From the sequence record PQ309151.1: a stretch of 64,000 nucleotides of DNA; one strand, 5' to 3'. This document shows, piece after piece, positions 10,133 through 63,875 of the stretch. Position numbers and translations under genes: made by a program. The stretch's first letter is position 1; each line of letters begins with the position of its first letter. The notes below the pieces were generated by a model that made no database searches, was not told the DNA's origin, and worked only from the letters and a program-made list of their open reading frames with translations.

Positions 10133-12274
10133 GTGCCTGAAATTGTCCTACGCCTCATAAAAAAGGTGCGAAATAGAATGGATAATATTCTGTTGCTCAA
10201 CAAGCGACATAAAACCGCAGTTTACCCCAGTGATCTACTGGTAGTTGACATCGATAGAACCTGTCCTATCCTTGGAAATCCTTTTCCATTGAAAGACCAC
10301 AATGACGATGAAGAACGCGATTCTGTAATCCGCGAATACCGTCGTCATTTCGAAAAAGAATACGCTGCTAACGGTGTACTCACGAAACGAATTCATGAAT
10401 TAACGGACCTGGTTCTCTCTGGTAAGCGGATCGGTCTTAGATGCTGGTGTAGCCCTAAACGGTGTCACGGCAATGTAATCATTTCAAAAATCCGAGAACT
10501 ACTGGAAGGAAACATGTCTGAATCGCCGCAAAATCCCAGTAAAGAGTTTCTGAACTATCCTTTCGCAAAGGAAGACATCGACTATACGGAATGCCGGTTT
10601 GCGATCCACATTCCGAAAAACAAACATGACGAGAAGGGTATCGACCTTCACATGGTGAAGGAAGTCATCCACTTCAAGGATGGCACGGTCAAACCGTGGG
10701 TTCGATACATTCCGAACTACCAGTGCAAATTCTGGACGACGAAGCCTCATGTTCGTAACGGCAAGTTTGCACACAAGCAGAAGAAAGAGTGGGAATCACT
10801 CGACAATCTGGTTGAAGGTCAAGCTACGGCTTCCGGAATGGGCTTTGCAGTTGCTCGTGCATTGGACCAGATGCGTCTTGCTGATCGTATCTTCGATCTG
10901 AAAGATTCGCCTTACGTCTACGGTCTGGATATTCCGTCGACAGTGCAGTTGAAGCACGACTACACTGTGCGGATGCAAGGTAAGGCAGATACGCCGTTTA
11001 CCATTGCCTATTCGGATACGGAAACGAACATGCTGGGCATCGAAGAAGGTGCAAGCAAACACATCATCATGCAGTCCCTCTTCCATGAAGATGGTCGACT
11101 GTTCACGGTGATCCTCGAAGACTTCGTGAAGACCCTGCCTAACCCGCAGAAAGATCTTCGTGCCCTCTACGACGAACACATGCCTGCTCAGGGCAAGGAT
11201 CTCGTTAAAGAGTGGGAAATCGCAATCGTCAAAGAACCGATCGACATCGTCAAGGCAATTTTGCAACGTTGCCATACGTGGCAGCCTGACTTCCTGTCGT
11301 TCTGGAACATGATCTTCGACTTGGACAAGATGATCGAATGCGTGGAGAACGCTGGTTATCGTGTCGAAGACATCTTCTGCGATCCTCGTCTGCCGCGTGA
11401 GTTACGCTATGCTTTCTTAAAGCGTGCTAATCCGTCCAAGACGTCGGCTTCAGGCCGTTTGATGACCAAGAAGCCTGCTGACCAATGGCATAGCTTCCTG
11501 TGTCCTGCCTCGTTTTACATCATTGACCAGATGGCTACCTACCGCTTCGTTCGTAAGTCGAAGCAGTTGGAAAAGTCTTACGGTCTGGATGACATTCTGG
11601 GCAAGGAACTCGAAGGTCTGGGTAAGCTCAAGCACAAGCCTGCTGAAGGTTTGACTAAAGCTGAATTCCACATCTTCATGCAACAGAAGTATCCTGGCGA
11701 GTATGTGATCTATCACATCTGGGATGCGGTCTGTATGCACCTGTTGACGTTGAAGACGAAGGATCTGTCATTCTCGTTGCCAGGTACGACGGAGTTCTCG
11801 GACTTCGTGAGCTTTGAATCGGAACCGAAGCGCTATATCCACAAGTTCCATTTCTACGCATTGGAAAACCATCGATGCGTGACTGGTGTATCCAGTAAAG
11901 CTCTGGTGCAAGCGTACGACGAGATGACTATCTCCACCAAAGGTCACATCGTCACACTTGAACCACACTTGACTGTAGATTCTGGGATGAAGATCTTCAA
12001 CGATTATCCCGAGTTACAGACAAACTTCTACGGCCACAATGCTGACCTGGATGTGAAGTCCAGTTATCCGTACGGCCAGTGGGTTTTCAACATGTCGCGT
12101 CAAACGACTGTTCGTGAACTCATCGAGATCGAAGGTGTGCGAGATCATACTCGTCGCATCCAAGGTCTTAACATCTCCGGTGGACGCAGTAACGCAGTTG
12201 AATTCTGTACTGAGGTGTTCGGTCTTCCGACTCTTGCTGAACTCGACAAAATCTACGATCAGGCAAATGCATAA
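10133..12274 (+). CDS. polB: Split family-B DNA polymerase, 3'-5' exonuclease subunit (phiKZ gp82-like), with an in-frame N-terminal DUF4326-like domain
   Basis: ExoI SDTET, ExoII NMIFD, ExoIII YHIWD and pol motif A DVKSSYP; N-terminal GNPF...LRCWCSPKRCHG; likely starts at ATG 10178 and an internal ATG at 10514 with a GGAAGGA RBS. Confidence 0.85.
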   Translation: MPEIVLRLIKKVRNRMDNILLLNKRHKTAVYPSDLLVVDIDRTCPILGNPFPLKDHNDDEERDSVIREYRRHFEKEYAANGVLTKRIHELTDLVLSGKRIGLRCWCSPKRCHGNVIISKIRELLEGNMSESPQNPSKEFLNYPFAKEDIDYTECRFAIHIPKNKHDEKGIDLHMVKEVIHFKDGTVKPWVRYIPNYQCKFWTTKPHVRNGKFAHKQKKEWESLDNLVEGQATASGMGFAVARALDQMRLADRIFDLKDSPYVYGLDIPSTVQLKHDYTVRMQGKADTPFTIAYSDTETNMLGIEEGASKHIIMQSLFHEDGRLFTVILEDFVKTLPNPQKDLRALYDEHMPAQGKDLVKEWEIAIVKEPIDIVKAILQRCHTWQPDFLSFWNMIFDLDKMIECVENAGYRVEDIFCDPRLPRELRYAFLKRANPSKTSASGRLMTKKPADQWHSFLCPASFYIIDQMATYRFVRKSKQLEKSYGLDDILGKELEGLGKLKHKPAEGLTKAEFHIFMQQKYPGEYVIYHIWDAVCMHLLTLKTKDLSFSLPGTTEFSDFVSFESEPKRYIHKFHFYALENHRCVTGVSSKALVQAYDEMTISTKGHIVTLEPHLTVDSGMKIFNDYPELQTNFYGHNADLDVKSSYPYGQWVFNMSRQTTVRELIEIEGVRDHTRRIQGLNISGGRSNAVEFCTEVFGLPTLAELDKIYDQANA

Positions 12275-12276
12275 AG

Positions 12277-12320
12277 CATAGGCTCCTACTCCTAGCCGCA
12301 AGGCTAGGAGTAGGTCTATG
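12277..12320. terminator. Hairpin between convergent genes (GCAA loop, CATA/TATG flanks)
   Basis: CATA-ggct-CCTACTCCTAGCC-GCAA-GGCTAGGAGTAGG-tc-TATG. Confidence 0.7.
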
Positions 12321-12324
12321 TCTG

Positions 12325-14199: not shown

Positions 14200-14793
14200 T
14201 CACCAGAGACTATATCCAGATGGACAGTACTGAGGTGCCGCGATCCAGTCGACGATTGTGGTACCAGTTGCCGAGTTTGGACTCGATGTACAGGGGAAAA
14301 ACGTAGTTGCCAATGAGTAGTTATTGGGTGACCCATAGGTAATGGTCGGTTGTGCTACGCCATTTCTGATGTAGAAGATCGTTTTGGCAGTAAAATCAAT
14401 CGCGCATCCGATCACATCGAGCATCGCAGGCGTTGTGCCGTAATTGATTCGCTGATTGGCCTGATAGATAAGCTGAGCGCTACCCGAACCACCGTAGTAC
14501 CAGAACAACTCATTCGAGTTGGTATTCCATGGAGACTGGTAATTATAAGCACCCATTACGCCGACCATTGGCATAAACGAAAAGCTATTACCTTCAAACT
14601 GGGTAAGTTTTACTTCGAAATACCACTTACCTGAGTTATGCGATACGTTGGCAAAAACCGCGCCACCAGAATTACCACAGTTGGCTCTAAGATTCCCGTT
14701 CGAAAGCGTAACGCTAGCCGCTTTGTTTGAAGGACTCCACGTGGTAGTCGTGCCTGCCAACTTCTTCTTGGAAAGGAGAAATGATTCCTGCAT
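14200..14793 (-). CDS. SPRY/B30.2 domain protein, LLLKKK-tagged
   Basis: TWSP...LSNGNL...SGKWYFE...DVIGCAIDF...YIRNG; ends PSGYSLW. Confidence 0.8.
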   Translation of the reverse strand: MQESFLLSKKKLAGTTTTWSPSNKAASVTLSNGNLRANCGNSGGAVFANVSHNSGKWYFEVKLTQFEGNSFSFMPMVGVMGAYNYQSPWNTNSNELFWYYGGSGSAQLIYQANQRINYGTTPAMLDVIGCAIDFTAKTIFYIRNGVAQPTITYGSPNNYSLATTFFPCTSSPNSATGTTIVDWIAAPQYCPSGYSLW

Positions 14794-14833
14794 AGGAAAC
14801 CCGTATTAGAAGTTCAGTGTCATAGGATCCGAA

Positions 14834-14872
14834 CATAGACCTCCTACTGGGCTTTCGCCCAGTAGGAGTGTC
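14834..14872 (-). terminator. GAAA-loop hairpin followed by TATG on the minus strand
   Basis: CATA-gac-CTCCTACTGGGC-TTTC-GCCCAGTAGGAG. Confidence 0.65.
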
Positions 14873-14873
14873 A

Positions 14874-16517: not shown

Positions 16518-17273
16518 TTAAGCGGCGGTGTTGCCGATTTCCTCAGAGTTTGCTGCTTCCGGACTTTCGCCCGATGCTGCCTTTTGACGAGCCTTGATGA
16601 TGCAGATCGCCATGTCCACGGCCACCAGGAAGTGAGCGTGGGAAGTCATATACGGATTCTTGGGAACAGAAACCGTACTTGCCAGCCGCCGCGGATCACC
16701 GGCTTCTTCATAGTTCTCCAGCGGCGCAGTCGTCTGATACGCATCGATCATTTCCTTGGTAGCGGCAATGACTGTGTCGACCCAGACATACTTCTTTTTC
16801 CATGCAGCCTTGTAATAGCGCTTGGCGTCCTCGACACTATAGCCGGCCAGAGCGAGCGTCGCCAGGCAGCCTTGTTCGAAGATCGCACGGGTGCGAACAG
16901 ACAGTGGAAGCGCGACGATCGTTCGCCCAACTTCCTTCTCGTCTTGCTTGCGGATATTTACCCGCAGATCCCATTCGCCGATGCGATGCGGAACGCGGCT
17001 CCAGCCGTGGAAGAATTGCACCAGGTCCTTCTGGCGTCCTTCCCCGACGATCTTTTCGATCTCTGCTACGGCCGCTTCGTCAGCGGGGCTTGCGAGAGTT
17101 ACAGGTGCCGGACGGTGAGCCGGGCGATGCACAGCTTGATGGTTGGTTCCACGACTGAACGTCGAAACATGCGGCCGATGCCGCTGGCCTTCTTGAGACT
17201 GGGGCGTATTCTTTTTGTTGCCACCGAATCGATGTGCCATATTGAGATAAGTCATAACAGACTCCCAAGACAT
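16518..17273 (-). CDS. Hypothetical protein with basic, disordered N-terminus
   Basis: 251 aa; first gene downstream of an early-type promoter. Confidence 0.6.
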   Translation of the reverse strand: MSWESVMTYLNMAHRFGGNKKNTPQSQEGQRHRPHVSTFSRGTNHQAVHRPAHRPAPVTLASPADEAAVAEIEKIVGEGRQKDLVQFFHGWSRVPHRIGEWDLRVNIRKQDEKEVGRTIVALPLSVRTRAIFEQGCLATLALAGYSVEDAKRYYKAAWKKKYVWVDTVIAATKEMIDAYQTTAPLENYEEAGDPRRLASTVSVPKNPYMTSHAHFLVAVDMAICIIKARQKAASGESPEAANSEEIGNTAA

Positions 17274-17353
17274 AATTTTGGTAAGCGAGGAATTCGCTTG
17301 TTTTCACCAACAGAACAGAACTCGGCAAAAGGTTTTAGCCGGAAATTCATTTT

Positions 17354-17379
17354 GATTATATATTGTTGATTTTTTCTGC
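17354..17379 (-). promoter_or_regulatory. Early-type phage promoter motif
   Basis: Minus strand GCAGAAAAAATCAACAATATATAATC; resembles the copies at 44569 and 54325. Confidence 0.5.
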
Positions 17380-17411
17380 ATTATATCTGCATGTCAGACA
17401 AATAAAAACAG

Positions 17412-17449
17412 ACATAGACCAATACCGGAGGCCTCTCGGCCTCCGGTAT
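17412..17449 (-). terminator. GAGA-loop hairpin followed by TATG and a T-rich run
   Basis: ATACCGGAGGCC-TCTC-GGCCTCCGGTAT with CATA at 17413-17416. Confidence 0.7.
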
Positions 17450-17451
17450 CG

Positions 17452-23550: not shown

Positions 23551-23565
23551 TCGCAGCAATGCGGT

Positions 23566-23609
23566 CATAGACATCCTCCTGGCGCAAGCCAGGAGGATGT
23601 CTAGTTATG
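23566..23609. terminator. Hairpin between convergent genes (GCAA loop, CATA/TATG flanks)
   Basis: AGACATCCTCCTGGC-GCAA-GCCAGGAGGATGTCT, 15 bp. Confidence 0.7.
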
Positions 23610-23613
23610 CCGT

Positions 23614-25173: not shown

Positions 25174-25228
25174 TTTAAAAACCCCTGCTTGTTATTACTG
25201 TTACTGGTTTCGGTCGAAAACCAAATAA

Positions 25229-25426
25229 TCAGTCTCGGGTTATGTTGTATAAATCTTTCAGTTCGGGATGGAATACACGAAGCTGAAGCATGTCTCGGCA
25301 ATTGGGGATTTCGTTGAATTCGAAGAACATGTTGAAGGCTTGTCCTTTCTCATCAACCAGTTGACAGAGGAAGTGTCTGTCTTGAGGTAGCTTCTTCATC
25401 AATTCGATTACGTCTGCCGGTGTCAT
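25229..25426 (-). CDS. Small hypothetical protein
   Basis: 65 aa; GAGG RBS; begins just after the terminator at 25455-25498. Confidence 0.55.
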   Translation of the reverse strand: MTPADVIELMKKLPQDRHFLCQLVDEKGQAFNMFFEFNEIPNCRDMLQLRVFHPELKDLYNITRD

Positions 25427-25454
25427 AAAACCTCAAAAAAATAAGTAGACAGCA

Positions 25455-25498
25455 AAAAGGGCGGTACAGAGAGGCCGAAGCCTCCCCATACCGTGCCT
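25455..25498 (-). terminator. Rho-independent terminator (UUCG loop plus U-tract)
   Basis: Minus strand GGCACGGTATGGGGAGGC-TTCG-GCCTCTCTGTACCGCCC-TTTTT. Confidence 0.8.
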
Positions 25499-25499
25499 A

Positions 25500-25990
25500 A
25501 GATGAAACTGAACTTACAATCCAAGGTCGTCGCATCACCACAAGGAAATGACGAGTGACGACTATGGGCTGTAAGCTTGGCAGCGAGCGTCTCCCGACGT
25601 TTCGCATAGCTTACAACTGTCCCGGAAAGACCCCTTACAGACGATACGGGCTTAACACACACGAAGGCCCGAGTGCTCAATACGCAGCCGCGAACGCGCG
25701 CGGCAGCGATACGGCAAGACATCACTGAACTCTTAAAGAGATCTCATATCGGCGGCACTAAGAGGCGGCCATGAGACGTGACTGCGCTGCGGGTAGAGGA
25801 CACGATATCTCTTGATCGAACCTCAGCCGCAATACGACGTGTGTGTTTCGCGGGCCTTTCACCCGAGTGAAGAGTAGCGGCGTAACGCCGGCCCTAACAC
25901 CTCTGCCTCGAACAGATCTTCAGAAGCCCTCTTGTTAAAGAACGAACAGGCGGAACGATCCCTCACGAGATTGGTCCCGCCAGCAGACTA
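25500..25990 (-). ncRNA. Candidate large structured non-coding RNA
   Basis: ~490 nt with no credible ORF; multiple helices, GGGA/GAAA/GTGA tetraloops on the minus strand, 10-nt and 8-nt long-range complementarities, downstream terminator. Confidence 0.55.
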
Positions 25991-25993
25991 CGC

Positions 25994-27346
25994 TTACGGT
26001 TGCAGCGTGTCGGTTTCGTCAGCAGCAGCTGCGCCGTCTGCATCTGCCTTCACTTCGGTTTGAGCCGGAGCTTGTGCATCTGCTTGCGGTGCGACTTCTG
26101 CCGTACCTTCAGCAGCCGGGGCTGCGTCGACAGCGGGAGCAGCGACTTGTTCAGCCGTTGTGTCCACTGCCGGCGTTTCCACGGCCGGAACTTCTGCTTG
26201 CGCTTGTGCAGCGTCGGTTTCCACCGGCGCAGCCGTTTGCGCTGCGTCAGCAGCTTGTTCCACCGGAGCAGCGTCGACCGGAGCGCCTGCGAGTGCAGCT
26301 GCCGTTGCCGGATCTGCATTCACTTCAGGCGTTTGGGCCAGAGCTTCGGGCGAGTGATCGACTTCAGCCGGAGCATCGGCGGTTTGTTCCACCGCAGGAG
26401 CTTCGGTTTGAGCCACATCACCAGCCGGTGCGGTTGCTTGTTCTGCAGCGGGGACTTCAGCTTGAGCAGCGTCTGCTGCCGGGGCATCCACCTGTGCTGC
26501 AACTTCCGGTGCTGCTTGCTCGCCGGCGGCGGGGTCGACTTCCGGGGCAGCTTCTTGAGCCACGCCTTCGTCGGCTGCGCCAGCCGGTTGAGCTTGTTCA
26601 GCAGCAGTGTCGGTCGTTTCAGCTGCAGCTTGGGCCGGTACTTCGGCTTGAGCATCTGCTGCTTGATCGACGACTTGCGGAGCTGCGTCAACCGGGGTTT
26701 CAGCTTGCGCTTCGCCAGCGGCCGGATCCGTTTCTGCTACTGCGGGAGCTTCCGGCGTTTCCACCGGTGCTACGTCTGCGGGCTGTTCCACTGCGGGTGC
26801 AGCTTGTTCAGCCGTACCTGCATCCGTGCCCGCTGCCGGATCTTGAGCAGCGTCGCCAGCAACTGCGGGAGCCGCATCTGCCGGTTGTTCTGCTTGTGCG
26901 TCGCCTGCCGGCGCTGCATCGGTCGTGCCAGCGTCAGCCGGTGCGTCGACTTGTGCCGGGGCATCGCCCGTCGGTTGTGGTGCATCGGCGCCAGTGTTGT
27001 CTGCCGGAGTAGCAGCCTGGTCACCCGTCGATGCGTCCGCTTGCGAAGCGTCCGTACCTGCGTCTTGTTGTGCTGCGCCGTCAGCGATCTGGTTGTCCAG
27101 TTCAGCTGCGGCTGCGCCAGCGGCTGCGGCGGCTGCCGTACCATTGTCGCCCAGACCGAGTGCTTCGTTCGTGGTGTCGCCGAGAGGTGCGTCTTCGGCT
27201 GCCGGCGGAACGATCGGATGGTCTTCTTTCTTCTTGTGGAAGAGGCTGATAACGCGGTCGAGCACGTGCTCGGGCAGTGCGGCGAGGGCTTCGATCGCCA
27301 GGATTTCGGTCTTCAGTTCGTCGAGAACTTTGTGGATGAGGCTCAC
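25994..27346 (-). CDS. Acidic Ala/Pro/Glu/Asp/Gln-rich intrinsically disordered protein with degenerate repeats
   Basis: 450 aa; AAGGA RBS; ~40-aa helical N-terminus, then ~400 aa almost devoid of K/R and aromatic residues. Confidence 0.8.
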   Translation of the reverse strand: MSLIHKVLDELKTEILAIEALAALPEHVLDRVISLFHKKKEDHPIVPPAAEDAPLGDTTNEALGLGDNGTAAAAAAGAAAAELDNQIADGAAQQDAGTDASQADASTGDQAATPADNTGADAPQPTGDAPAQVDAPADAGTTDAAPAGDAQAEQPADAAPAVAGDAAQDPAAGTDAGTAEQAAPAVEQPADVAPVETPEAPAVAETDPAAGEAQAETPVDAAPQVVDQAADAQAEVPAQAAAETTDTAAEQAQPAGAADEGVAQEAAPEVDPAAGEQAAPEVAAQVDAPAADAAQAEVPAAEQATAPAGDVAQTEAPAVEQTADAPAEVDHSPEALAQTPEVNADPATAAALAGAPVDAAPVEQAADAAQTAAPVETDAAQAQAEVPAVETPAVDTTAEQVAAPAVDAAPAAEGTAEVAPQADAQAPAQTEVKADADGAAAADETDTLQP

Positions 27347-28170: not shown

Positions 28171-28171
28171 G

Positions 28172-28490
28172 ATAATTCCAGTATTGAGTTAGAAAGCATT
28201 TCTCTCTTTACTGGACTTCTCGATACCTAACCACACCCAAGCTGCGCCTTCGGAGAAGGGTGGTCCGAGATCTATATCGCTACACGTAGCGCTTTGTTGA
28301 GCCGCACACCGTGGGAGGTTGGAGTATGCGCTCGAACTCGATCTCAAGACCGAAAAAAAAATGCAGGAAGGCATCTTCCTGCAAAAGGGGGGTTGCCCAG
28401 AACGCATGCCTTGTTTAAGGGCGCATCCCGATGGGTCTGAGGCTGCCGCTGGTGCGAGCTGCAATCGAGACGATCGTTCTGGGCAAATCA
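28172..28490 (-). ncRNA. Candidate structured RNA island: two multibranch units separated by a terminator
   Basis: 12-bp stem 28393-28404/28475-28486 enclosing hairpins; terminator at 28352-28383; further stems GAGATC/GATCTC, CGCTAC/GTAGCG and TCCAGTA/TACTGGA. Confidence 0.4.
28352..28383 (-). terminator. Rho-independent terminator
   Basis: TGCAGGAAG-(ATGC)-CTTCCTGCA followed by about 9 T on the minus strand. Confidence 0.8.
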
Positions 28491-28518
28491 TAGCTAAAGC
28501 ATTTATTTTTTTATAGTC

Positions 28519-39779: not shown

Positions 39780-39794
39780 AAGAACAAAAGAAAA

Positions 39795-39833
39795 TACTAC
39801 TGGATCCCGTGAGGGATCCAGTAGTACCTTATG
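39795..39833. terminator. Hairpin between convergent genes (GTGA loop, TATG)
   Basis: TACTACTGGATCCC-GTGA-GGGATCCAGTAGTA-cct-TATG. Confidence 0.7.
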
Positions 39834-39838
39834 CCGTC

Positions 39839-52181: not shown

Positions 52182-52202
52182 CTCTGTTCTCAAGTTGACG
52201 GC

Positions 52203-52243
52203 AAAAAAGAAAATAGAGAGATCCCCGAAGGGATCTCTCTATT
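52203..52243 (-). terminator. chmA terminator (UUCG loop plus U-tract)
   Basis: AATAGAGAGATCCC-CGAA-GGGATCTCTCTATT followed by TTCTTTTTT on the minus strand. Confidence 0.8.
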
Positions 52244-55602: not shown

Positions 55603-55604
55603 TT

Positions 55605-55643
55605 CATACACTACCATCCCTTGCGGGATGGTAGTGTATTTTT
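55605..55643. terminator. Hairpin between convergent genes (GCAA loop on minus strand, TATG)
   Basis: ATACACTACCATCCC-TTGC-GGGATGGTAGTGTAT, 15 bp. Confidence 0.7.
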
Positions 55644-55648
55644 GCTGT

Positions 55649-56302
55649 CTATAGTAACCACAACTGAAAACGCTTTAGCAATCCGACATAAGCATACGTC
55701 GAACTAAGGTCGTCCGAACATCCGAACGCCAGGTATGTGTCGCCCGGCTGAGTCAGATCAGAATACGTCGACGTGACGCCGGTTCGATTATTTTTGACGG
55801 TATACGTTCCGTTCTGTTTGGTGAGTACCATCTGTTCCAGTACAGCACCAGGGTAAGTTACACCACCCAGATAACACCGAGAAAATGTAGTACCTGTCGA
55901 CAGGAAAGCCTGGAAGTATTGACTCGTCTGATTCAGGTTAAGAAGAAGACCAGGCTGATTGCCGTGTGCGTTGTAATCGCCCGAACGGAACAAAACCTTG
56001 GACGAGGCTGCTGATTGAGGAACAAAATCAACCTCAAGCCGATAAGGTTTATTACTGAATTGAAGAAGGTTGGCGCAATCGAAATATGTCAGACCAGTGA
56101 ACTGGTAGCATTTTCCAAATGTCGGATCATTGATTACGCCGTCAGTTGGCGAACCAGAAATCACATGTCGAACAAATGTTCGAGCACCTGTACCATTGTC
56201 GACCAGGTTCTTATCCCCAACATTGGCGGAATCGAACTGGATACTGAGAACAGCTGTCGTTGCTGTCGCTGATTTCTTTTTTAACAATAAAGCTTCTTGC
56301 AT
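55649..56302 (-). CDS. ConA/LamG-like beta-sandwich protein, LLLKKK-tagged
   Basis: MQEALLLKKK; FGKCYQFTG...YRLEVDF...GLLKRFQLW pattern. Confidence 0.6.
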   Translation of the reverse strand: MQEALLLKKKSATATTAVLSIQFDSANVGDKNLVDNGTGARTFVRHVISGSPTDGVINDPTFGKCYQFTGLTYFDCANLLQFSNKPYRLEVDFVPQSAASSKVLFRSGDYNAHGNQPGLLLNLNQTSQYFQAFLSTGTTFSRCYLGGVTYPGAVLEQMVLTKQNGTYTVKNNRTGVTSTYSDLTQPGDTYLAFGCSDDLSSTYAYVGLLKRFQLWLL

Positions 56303-60400: not shown

Positions 60401-60510
60401 TTGTTCCCTTTTCCTAAGGTTGACAGCAAAAAAAGATGAAATCCCGTAAAGCATCCGAAGATCACTTTACGGGACGGATTCAAACTATGCAGTGACCTAA
60501 CAAAAAAATA

Positions 60511-63682: not shown

Positions 63683-63824
63683 CTAAGCTTCCTCTTTGTA
63701 AAATGCCTCTAAAAGCTGCAGAATGACCCCGTAGTGCATTTGATTAGTGTCGGATATAAGAATATACTTATAACCATTCCGAAGCCTTCAAAGCGCCTAA
63801 AATTTAAATAGAAAAATCTGGCAG

Positions 63825-63868
63825 CATAAGTGAACTACTCCAGAACCCCGTGAGGAGTTCTGGAGTAT
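63825..63868 (-). terminator. Hairpin followed by TATG after the PhuZ-like gene
   Basis: TACTCCAGAAC...GTGA...GTTCTGGAGTA with CATA at 63825. Confidence 0.55.
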
Positions 63869-63875
63869 CCCAGCT

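Follow-up and report, generated by a model that had tools for sequence, protein, structure and literature searches.

What does the longest unannotated stretch of a jumbo-phage sequence encode? The window analysed here, 64 kb (64,000 nucleotides, nt) of Ralstonia phage RsoM3USA (PQ309151.1), a jumbo phage with PhuZ from the RSL2/RSF1 (Chiangmaivirus) group, contains such a stretch: a gap of 567 nt between two minus-strand genes (25427-25993; window 25300-26100 equals record positions 149300-150100). A preliminary description, made from the letters alone, had placed there a densely paired non-coding element of no recognised RNA family, had read its pairings as a pseudoknot or as two alternative folds, and had offered four functions (scaffold, decoy for a ChmC-like protein, ribozyme, riboswitch). 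Our analysis indicates that the gap almost certainly encodes a conserved, structured non-coding RNA on the minus strand. On balance, its sequence leads us to favour the view that the core of this RNA (25929-25648) is a hammerhead-like self-cleaving ribozyme of type I topology, in an expanded and unusual build.

A conserved structured RNA on the minus strand

The gap is the largest in the window free of open reading frames (ORFs), as had been claimed, if one ORF of 100 amino acids (aa) is set aside: this sole long ORF (25423-25725, minus strand) is preserved in no relative, and indels between lineages (1, 2, 5, 6, 15 and 17 nt), which are not confined to multiples of three, break its frame. A protein-coding reading was dropped for want of a conserved ORF; a small ORF beginning AUGGCUUCUGAAG is without its AUG in RsoM3USA. 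The gap carries no annotation in any relative, and the element is kept in all 10 of them (ten related records, including RSL2, RSF1, FLC4-4C/-5C/-11C, FLC6, FLC8 and SURPRISE13, with 77-82% identity over window 25300-26100).

Folding energy and covariation in homologs, two of the computational checks that the preliminary description had proposed, both argue for a structured RNA. Folded singly, the sequence stands out modestly from shuffled controls (z -3.0 on the minus strand, -3.8 on the plus strand). A consensus of nine sequences (RNAalifold) contains 163 pairs with compensatory changes in 26, and its energy is -162.6 kcal/mol on the minus strand versus -116.6 on the plus strand (column-shuffle z -11.3 versus -7.6). 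In a curated structure of 124 pairs, 96.9% of cells are canonical and 23 pairs have changed on both sides; shuffles average 11 such pairs (0/500 reach 23), and slid partners give 0-7. The strand follows from the wobble pairs: an A.C on the minus strand is a G.U on the plus strand, and 149 G.U versus 7 A.C cells on the minus strand point to selection on the pairing of a minus-strand RNA, not of DNA. The stems listed earlier (GTCGTC/GACGAC, TGTAAGCT/AGCTTACA with its GGGA loop, GCCGCG/CGCGGC, TCTCAT/ATGAGA and CGGCG/CGCCG) all exist and most of them covary. The conserved RNA unit spans ~25945-25455 on the minus strand, about 500 bases.

Known families offer no ready name for it. The Rfam 15 covariance models give zero matches in the window at gathering threshold and, at E up to 10 over 25200-26300, just two chance-level matches, both outside the gap; models of GOLLD, ROOL, OLE, HEARO and raiA do not match the element, and ARAGORN and Rfam find no tRNA or tmRNA in the window. 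A group I or II intron was rejected: the flanking genes are independent and variable, and there is no Rfam match. A description of the element was not found in the searchable literature, in agreement with its first presentation as an undescribed jumbo-phage RNA, and the jumbo-phage transcriptome papers found there report small RNAs only. A search for mRNA targets by duplex energy gave no outlier, with a method that is uninformative for a long RNA.

The core carries a hammerhead signature

Read along the minus strand, to which the coordinates of all parts of the RNA refer below, the core opens with the 5' strand of stem I (GGGCUU, 25924-25929), which pairs with AAGCCC (25653-25648), and continues into CUGAAGA (25917-25923), bases C3 to A9 in hammerhead numbering. 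Beyond the hairpins at the stem II position, an invariant C precedes G12, A13 and A14 (C-GAA, 25847-25850). Stem III then opens with A15.1 (25846) paired to U16.1 (25655); its 5' strand is ACACACACG (25838-25846) and its 3' strand is CGUGUGUGU (25655-25663). By the same numbering H17 is U25654, and the predicted scissile bond lies between 25654 and 25653 (...GUGUU|AAGCCC...), so that the returning strand of stem I, AAGCCC (25648-25653), would form the first bases of the predicted 3' product.

Across the eleven lineages compared (those of the Chiangmaivirus group and the distant relatives introduced below), all core bases are invariant. The C3-A9 strand reads CUGA[A/U/C]GA, matching the hammerhead's CUGANGA in all 11; C-GAA is unchanged in 11/11; A15.1-U16.1 is A-U in 11/11; and H17 is U, A or C, never G. 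The helices around these bases turn over. Stem I is canonical in 55/55 cells, and each of its 5 positions shows 3-4 pair types (RSF1 has GGCGU/ACGCC, L024 has AUCUG/CAGAU, and six other lineages carry further variants), and RSF1 provides a compensatory change within the genus (U-A to G-C). Stem III is canonical in 47/47 cells; in the alignment that includes L024, its helix has 12 pairs, 5 of them compensatory, and is 99% paired.

This second helix had been noticed before, as a match between the 10-mer AACACACACG (25654-63) and CGTGTGTGTT (25838-47), the latter being the plus-strand complement of the stem III 5' strand plus A14 (25847). It proves to be the best-supported helix of the RNA, with a pair probability of 0.97 in every phage, and in L024 it reads ACUCCCGUGU/ACACGGGAGU, with four pairs changed on both sides. 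The kissing-loop or pseudoknot interpretation attached to it does not hold: the helix is nested, is stem III, and closes a three-arm domain. Likewise, the hairpin CGGGCTT...AAGGCCCG drawn around the 10-mer has a pair probability of 0.00 and is disrupted in RSF1 and the FLC4 group.

Distant relatives extend the signature well beyond the genus. An RNA polymerase (RNAP) beta' profile retrieved 33 viral contigs, including L024 (IMG/VR, 218,660 bp), whose beta' is 70% identical to that of the window. The L024 homologue is syntenic, upstream of an ACP-like gene, is found by nhmmer (E 2e-6) and by the core-domain covariance model (47.8 bits, E 9e-12), and when folded alone adopts the same architecture. 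A scan of viral contigs with GGGTGAAAGGCCCNCGAAAC, a motif common to L024 and the window, then yielded compact elements of 66-80 nt in four contigs, which represent two lineages and adjoin tRNA genes. One of them, in L058, can be read as UCGCA-CUGAUGA-(ACGGUUCAAGUCCGU)-GUAU-(GGGUGAAAGGCCCA)-C-GAA-ACUC(UACG)GAGU-C|UGCGA, that is, a stem I strand, C3-A9, helices, G12-A14, stem III from A15.1-U16.1, H17 and the return of stem I. The hammerhead-shaped junction is the minimum free energy (MFE) fold of the compact relatives L056 and L058, and in the compact versions a loop of 2-9 nt caps stem III. A simple hammerhead descriptor recovered three further contigs (L061, L062 and L063); it has one match in the 64-kb window on both strands (C3 = 25923), shuffled windows giving 0.13 at its loose thresholds. 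It recovers all lineages except L064, a 172-kb contig with a different multi-arm insert in stem III, which was read by eye and from its MFE fold (two U.U mismatches in stem III).

The junction copies lie at 7375-7440 in L055, 3893-3960 in L058, 325-395 in L059, 3425-3500 in L056, 2645-2720 in L063, 130-205 in L061, 4330-4415 in L062 and about 8585-8830 in L064; the host contigs are unrelated and measure 12-310 kb. Other searches were empty or returned noise: nhmmer and covariance-model searches of the syntenic regions of 30 more distant RNAP-beta' phage contigs, of Xoo-sp14 and of RP12 found only L024 homologous; pattern scans with the 5' block (described below) gave chance matches only in metagenome and genome collections; and the plasmid collection held no match to the element. 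A pattern match in L060 was discarded as chance, since it falls in a protease-like coding region.

Together, these features make it very probable, as far as the sequence can tell, that the core is derived from or equivalent to a hammerhead. The statement that the RNA belongs to no known family thus stands in that no Rfam family matches at threshold, and falls in that the conserved core carries a hammerhead signature; of the four functions first offered, ribozyme is the one for which a hammerhead-like core now provides sequence evidence.

Two seven-nucleotide loops at the stem II position

The novelty of the junction lies where a hammerhead would have stem II. Immediately after A9 the RNA forms a hairpin (25902-25916, UCUG-UUCGAGG-CAGA) that resembles a tRNA T-arm, with a covarying 4-bp stem whose closing pair is an invariant G-C, and with a 7-nt loop of the form UUCRAnn. 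Its stem is canonical in 43/44 cells with variants UCUG/CAGA, CCGG/CCGG, GUGG/CCAC, GCCG/CGGC and GGGG/CCCC, its loop is UUCRAGK or UGCAAGU, and several lineages carry the tRNA T-arm consensus GGUUCAAGUCC. A variable hairpin, V1 (25867-25901, 35 nt in the window), is formed by a different sequence in each lineage; L058 lacks it, in L056 and L063 it is small, and in L064 it is long. The Z hairpin (25851-25865, CGGG-UGAAAGG-CCCG), which the invariant C follows, has the loop UGAAAGG or UGAAAAG and changes G-C to A-U at stem position 2 in 4/11 lineages.

This local hairpin also bears on the second long-range complementarity that had been proposed, AAGGCCCG (25664-71) with CGGGCCTT (25851-58), which is not supported. 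Its probability is 0.00 in all phages, RSF1 and the FLC4 group disrupt it, and the changes in RSF1 are compensated within the local hairpin, CAGG-UGAAAAG-CCUG. A first consensus fold, with the helix GCUUCUG/CAGAGGU and long-range pairs between 111-126 and 362-416, was abandoned because L024 and the compact relatives show stem I and the T hairpin instead.

Position 2 of the T-loop covaries with position 6 of the Z-loop, being (U,G) in 8 lineages and (G,A) in RSF1, L062 and L063. We infer from this a loop-loop contact like that between the T-loop and D-loop in the elbow of tRNA, a device that RNase P and T-box RNAs also use. Such a contact could hold the junction and replace the usual tertiary contact between stems I and II. 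The likeness to tRNA extends to the G-C-closed hairpin with its 7-nt UUCRAnn loop and to a second 7-nt loop ending in GG; unlike tRNA, the element has no cloverleaf, acceptor end or anticodon arm. The sequence GGGUGAAAGG (25858-25849) is presumably identical to a 10-mer in the specificity domain of bacterial RNase P RNA (E. coli M1), in a T-loop-forming region. No RNase P model matches it, and the likeness may reflect T-loop convergence or chance.

The three-arm insert and the 5' block

Stem III is capped in the window by a 174-nt insert of three arms, which measures 156-202 nt in the Chiangmaivirus group and L024 and has compensatory changes in each arm. Arm E (25785-25837) has six pairs with such changes. 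Arm F (25721-25782) is branched and carries conserved GGCCGCCUCU...GCCGCCGAU motifs that are retained in L024. Arm G (25667-25720) ends in the invariant tip GCGCGCGUUCGCG and has one pair changed from G-C to C-G and another from G-U to G-C. On the other side of the core, an invariant 5' block includes CUUUAACAA (25932-25940), a possible distal strand of stem I (Ib) that could pair with UUGUAAGGG (25640-25632). The complementarity is there in the sequence, the block is invariant and therefore has no covariation, and the energy model gives the pairing a probability of 0. The same block was considered as a recurrent promoter and rejected: it has no repeat in the window, and a weak nhmmer match (35139-35096) lies within a coding region.

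Upstream of the block, right after the stop codon of the upstream gene (25994-25996), stands the GUGA-loop hairpin (25946-25984) followed by UUCGUUCUUU, one of the two bounding structures of the preliminary description; both are present. The hairpin has compensatory changes in six pairs, is replaced by an unrelated weak hairpin in SURPRISE13 and is missing in L024. It is probably the terminator or 3' end of the 450-aa upstream gene, outside the conserved RNA unit.

The 3' domain and the terminator

The sequence downstream of the predicted cut is particular to the Chiangmaivirus group. This 3' domain (25510-25640) contains three copies of UGUAAG (25639-34, 25615-10 and 25518-13), one CUUACA (25575-70) and three hairpins (GGUCUU/GGGACC, the GGGA-loop hairpin and GUCGUC/GACGAC); the window has 14 TGTAAG sites, counting both strands, and four of them fall within this domain. 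The first UGUAAG copy could, from its complementarity to CUUUAACAA, extend stem I distally. About 190 nt downstream of the predicted cut are absent from L024, which thus has no 3' domain at all, so that the conserved unit comes down to the 5' block and the three-arm domain.

It is here, and not between the segments first named for it, that two alternative folds are found: AGCUUACA (25577-25570) can pair with UGUAAGCU (25616-25609), forming the GGGA-loop hairpin, or with UGUAAGUU (25518-25511), enclosing the GUCGUC/GACGAC hairpin and excluding the UGUAAGCU pairing. All lineages of the group retain both alternatives, which have one compensatory change apiece, and the forced folds differ by 1-7.5 kcal/mol.

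The RNA ends in an intrinsic terminator (25455-25497; hairpin 25497-25460 plus U5) with a stem of 13-14 bp, two compensatory pairs, a UUCG loop and CCCUUUUU. The terminator runs into a recurrent signal of the phage, UUUUGCUGUCUAC (25457-25445), to which the tail TTTTGCTGTCTAC belongs. The motif TTTTGCYGTCWAC has 4 sites in the window where 0.27 would be expected, each of them after an intergenic hairpin, and from its sequence context it seems to combine a terminator tail with a promoter-like signal of RsoM3USA. Its sites are 25445-25457, 52194-52206 and 60419-60431 on the minus strand and 55640-55652 on the plus strand, three of them 15-30 nt before gene starts.

Is the RNA a ribozyme?

Several observations weigh against self-cleavage. 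A search through all lineages for the canonical 10.1-11.1 closure of stem II found none: the nucleotide that follows A9 is paired within the T hairpin, the invariant C ahead of G12 is without a consistent partner, and the would-be 10.1/11.1 combinations are U.C, C.C, A.C or G-C. We know of no tested hammerhead with such a stem II junction. As the closed stem II that defines the class is lacking, we do not count the element among proven hammerheads but regard it as a hammerhead-like variant, which would most likely work as a hammerhead does. Rfam hammerhead models stay below gathering score on every example; the best score is 12.4 bits against a threshold of 48.5 (Hammerhead_3, in L056, weakly aligning CUGAUGAG...CGAAAC). 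Stem I has merely 5-6 bp. Imposing the hammerhead fold on full-length Chiangmaivirus RNAs costs 4.8-9.4 kcal/mol relative to the MFE, and in the energy model stem I has a probability of ~0, so that support for stem I comes from covariation. An H17 of U in GUU or AUU triplets is usually cleaved more slowly than GUC. The table of cores from 11 lineages was transcribed by hand from the descriptor and by-eye readings, and the covariation of the core domain with L024 included (25/61 pairs compensatory, against 8.5 in shuffles and 2-6 with slid partners) comes from an alignment that was fitted to the model and leans toward it. With these points counted, we still lean, if only somewhat, toward active self-cleavage during infection.

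The same junction might instead be an architectural module, or the inactivated relic of a ribozyme, within a stable non-catalytic structured RNA that acts as scaffold, decoy or RNA-only assembly. Much about the element would suit such a role: it is large and has conserved loop and junction sequences in arm F, the tip of arm G and the 5' block; it has a strong terminator of its own and no match to an Rfam family; its non-canonical stem II position could have killed catalysis; and other large, ornate phage-associated RNAs of unknown function exist (PMC12286853). We nevertheless regard a non-catalytic RNA as rather unlikely, because the core bases are invariant over 11 lineages despite complete turnover of the stems, even where the 66-80-nt versions reduce the element to its junction, and an invariant core amid such turnover is not easily accounted for unless the catalytic core is under selection.

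Regulation in cis is a different proposal, in which a leader or 3' untranslated region would govern read-through into the ACP-like operon, whether through attenuation, antitermination or the sensing of a ligand, or would stabilise the upstream mRNA. That the ACP-like cluster is always found downstream of the element while the upstream neighbour changes, and that two near-isoenergetic pairings alternate just before the terminator, speak for it. However, the terminator stem is perfect and is present in all MFE and local folds, the alternative AGCUUACA pairings do not overlap it, and a search for a conserved pairing that competes with it, as in a riboswitch or attenuator, found none; a terminator formed constitutively, whichever fold is predicted, argues against a classical riboswitch. 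In addition, the signals that follow the terminator (TTTTGCTGTCTAC, or TTATGC in L024) recur before other genes, suggesting separate downstream promoters, L024 lacks the 3' domain, and the compact relatives sit in tRNA regions rather than before an ACP-like operon. We consider cis-regulation quite improbable as the main role of the RNA. An element acting as DNA (replication origin, packaging site or cruciform) could make use of the dense inverted repeats and of a local minimum of cumulative GC skew near 26000, but at the 64-kb scale there is no skew inflection, and the 149 G.U versus 7 A.C cells count against pairing in DNA. With the alternative of an unannotated protein gene, which the frame-shifting indels and the lack of a conserved ORF oppose, it retains hardly any weight.

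A proposed course of cleavage

If the core is a ribozyme, we picture its course as follows. The RNA would be transcribed from the minus strand, with read-through from the upstream gene past the GUGA-loop hairpin as a possible source. It would fold into the junction, where the two 7-nt loops would touch, like the T- and D-loops in the elbow of a tRNA, and stand in for the stem I/stem II tertiary contact, and it would cleave itself after U25654. The 5' product would keep the ribozyme and the three-arm insert, end in a 2',3'-cyclic phosphate and, if read-through occurs, include the upstream mRNA. The 3' product (25653-25455, 199 nt) would start with a 5'-OH, end at the terminator and be able to refold between the two UGUAAG/CUUACA pairings. 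The three-arm insert might modulate the ribozyme or give the 5' product a second function. In its fullest form the proposal would describe a new hammerhead class in large phages, in which a mimic of the tRNA elbow, made of a T-loop and a GG-loop hairpin, replaces stem II, the multi-arm domain of 150-200 nt in stem III is a sensor or protein-binding switch, and cleavage regulated while a nucleus-forming jumbo phage infects its host frees a bistable 199-nt effector RNA with a 5'-OH; as a whole this scheme is speculative and unlikely to hold in every part.

Comparison with known ribozymes and large phage RNAs

Hammerheads are the best-studied small ribozymes, and the element shares with type I (RF00163, clan CL00010) the order of the parts, the invariant core and the covarying stems I and III. 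It differs in having two or three hairpins and no 10.1-11.1 closed stem II, in carrying 156-202 nt inside stem III, and in failing to reach any Rfam hammerhead threshold. Intergenic regions of phages commonly contain hammerheads, and a hammerhead whose loop is very large has been described in mouse (Perreault et al. 2011, PMC3088659); those of phages have been proposed to cut long transcripts into units, with big loops as possible control points (PMC3088659). Like these phage and prophage examples, the element is intergenic and tolerates weak stems and large loops, whereas theirs is a simple stem II of 1-5 bp, often with a loop I/stem II pseudoknot (PMC3088659). Non-circularly permuted hammerheads (SGC, CSG and GCS) cleave in spite of unexpected connectivity and extra helices (PMC10085705). 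The element, in contrast, keeps the classical C-G-S order of type I, and what is new in it lies at the stem II position and in stem III. With GOLLD and ROOL (PMC12286853) it has in common a length of ~500 nt, multiple arms, phage origin and, in some relatives, the neighbourhood of tRNA genes; it differs in giving no match to their models at E up to 10 and in having a recognisable ribozyme core. The searchable literature reports no hammerhead in jumbo phages, and none with a T-loop module.

A form that is recognisably hammerhead-like escapes every current covariance model and, in the jumbo phages, carries in stem III an insert three times the size of the ribozyme. If active, it would widen the known structural tolerance of the hammerhead core, it would be a naturally occurring candidate for a hammerhead under regulation, and it would be the first candidate ribozyme, with a precise predicted cleavage site, of nucleus-forming jumbo phages, in which the processing and export of RNA are still poorly understood. 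If inactive, it would still be a new RNA of ~500 nt, conserved throughout the genus, with a well-supported fold.

Genomic setting

The window encodes the tubulin PhuZ, two RNAP beta' pieces, DNA polymerases and a helicase, a set that marks a phiKZ-like jumbo phage, which probably forms a nucleus. The minus strand carries every gene between 23614 and ~35000. A 450-aa gene upstream (25994-27346) and a 65-aa gene downstream (25229-25426) flank the gap. The 65-aa gene is cleanly deleted in FLC6, FLC8 and FLC4-11C, all three of which retain the element; the downstream cluster with its ACP-like gene is constant beside the element, and the upstream neighbour varies, being a different gene in SURPRISE13 and L024. 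When neighbouring proteins were used as search anchors they proved to be genus-specific families without known function, and nothing was found outside the genus.

The 450-aa upstream protein has ~45 ordered N-terminal residues followed by ~400 residues of acidic low-complexity sequence rich in Ala, Pro, Glu, Asp, Thr and Gln. Pfam and PHROG gave no match for it, and its gene is present in a shorter or different version in RSF1, SURPRISE13 and L024. Identities along the locus are mosaic: the RsoM3USA element is nearest to that of SURPRISE13 (85-90%), and the ACP-like gene is nearest to the FLC4 group (97%), with just 76% to SURPRISE13.

Outside the genus, 4/7 lineages have the element within about 1.3 kb of tRNA genes, a neighbourhood that hints at a link with tRNA biology. 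Several junction copies are 0.5-1.3 kb from tRNA genes (Asp, Asn, Lys, Thr), L024 has a tRNA-Gly at 14767-14840, and in L058 ~1 kb without long ORFs separates the element from a tRNA array.

Other structured intergenic regions

Two more gaps of the window contain structure. An unannotated gap of 348 nt (28171-28518, minus strand; z -3.65) contains a long hairpin, UUGCCCAGAACG...CGUUCUGGGCAA, and after it an internal terminator, GCAGGAAGAUGCCUUCCUGC plus U9; a small RNA may be encoded there, or else an unannotated ORF of 100 aa (28189-28491). A gap of 412 nt (55603-56014, plus strand) opens with a perfect 15-bp terminator hairpin and the TTTTGCTGTCTAT signal, the remainder showing no marked structure (z -1.7). 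In Xanthomonas phage Xoo-sp14 (L020), an unannotated gap of 486 nt (11281-11766), one gene after the RNAP beta' homologue, folds very strongly (z -7.7) and forms several hairpins that resemble terminators; neither its sequence nor a profile shows similarity to the RsoM3USA element, and the phage collection contains no relatives of it.

TCTATG or TTATGC occurs within a few bases of GC-rich hairpins with GNRA or UUCG loops at 12275-12324, 14794-14873, 17256-17451, 23551-23613, 39780-39838 and 63683-63875 of the window and at 13920-13960 of L024. These sites resemble what we take to be the short TATG late-promoter motif of phiKZ. Other gaps of the window contain AT-rich ATATAT(A/C)A boxes.

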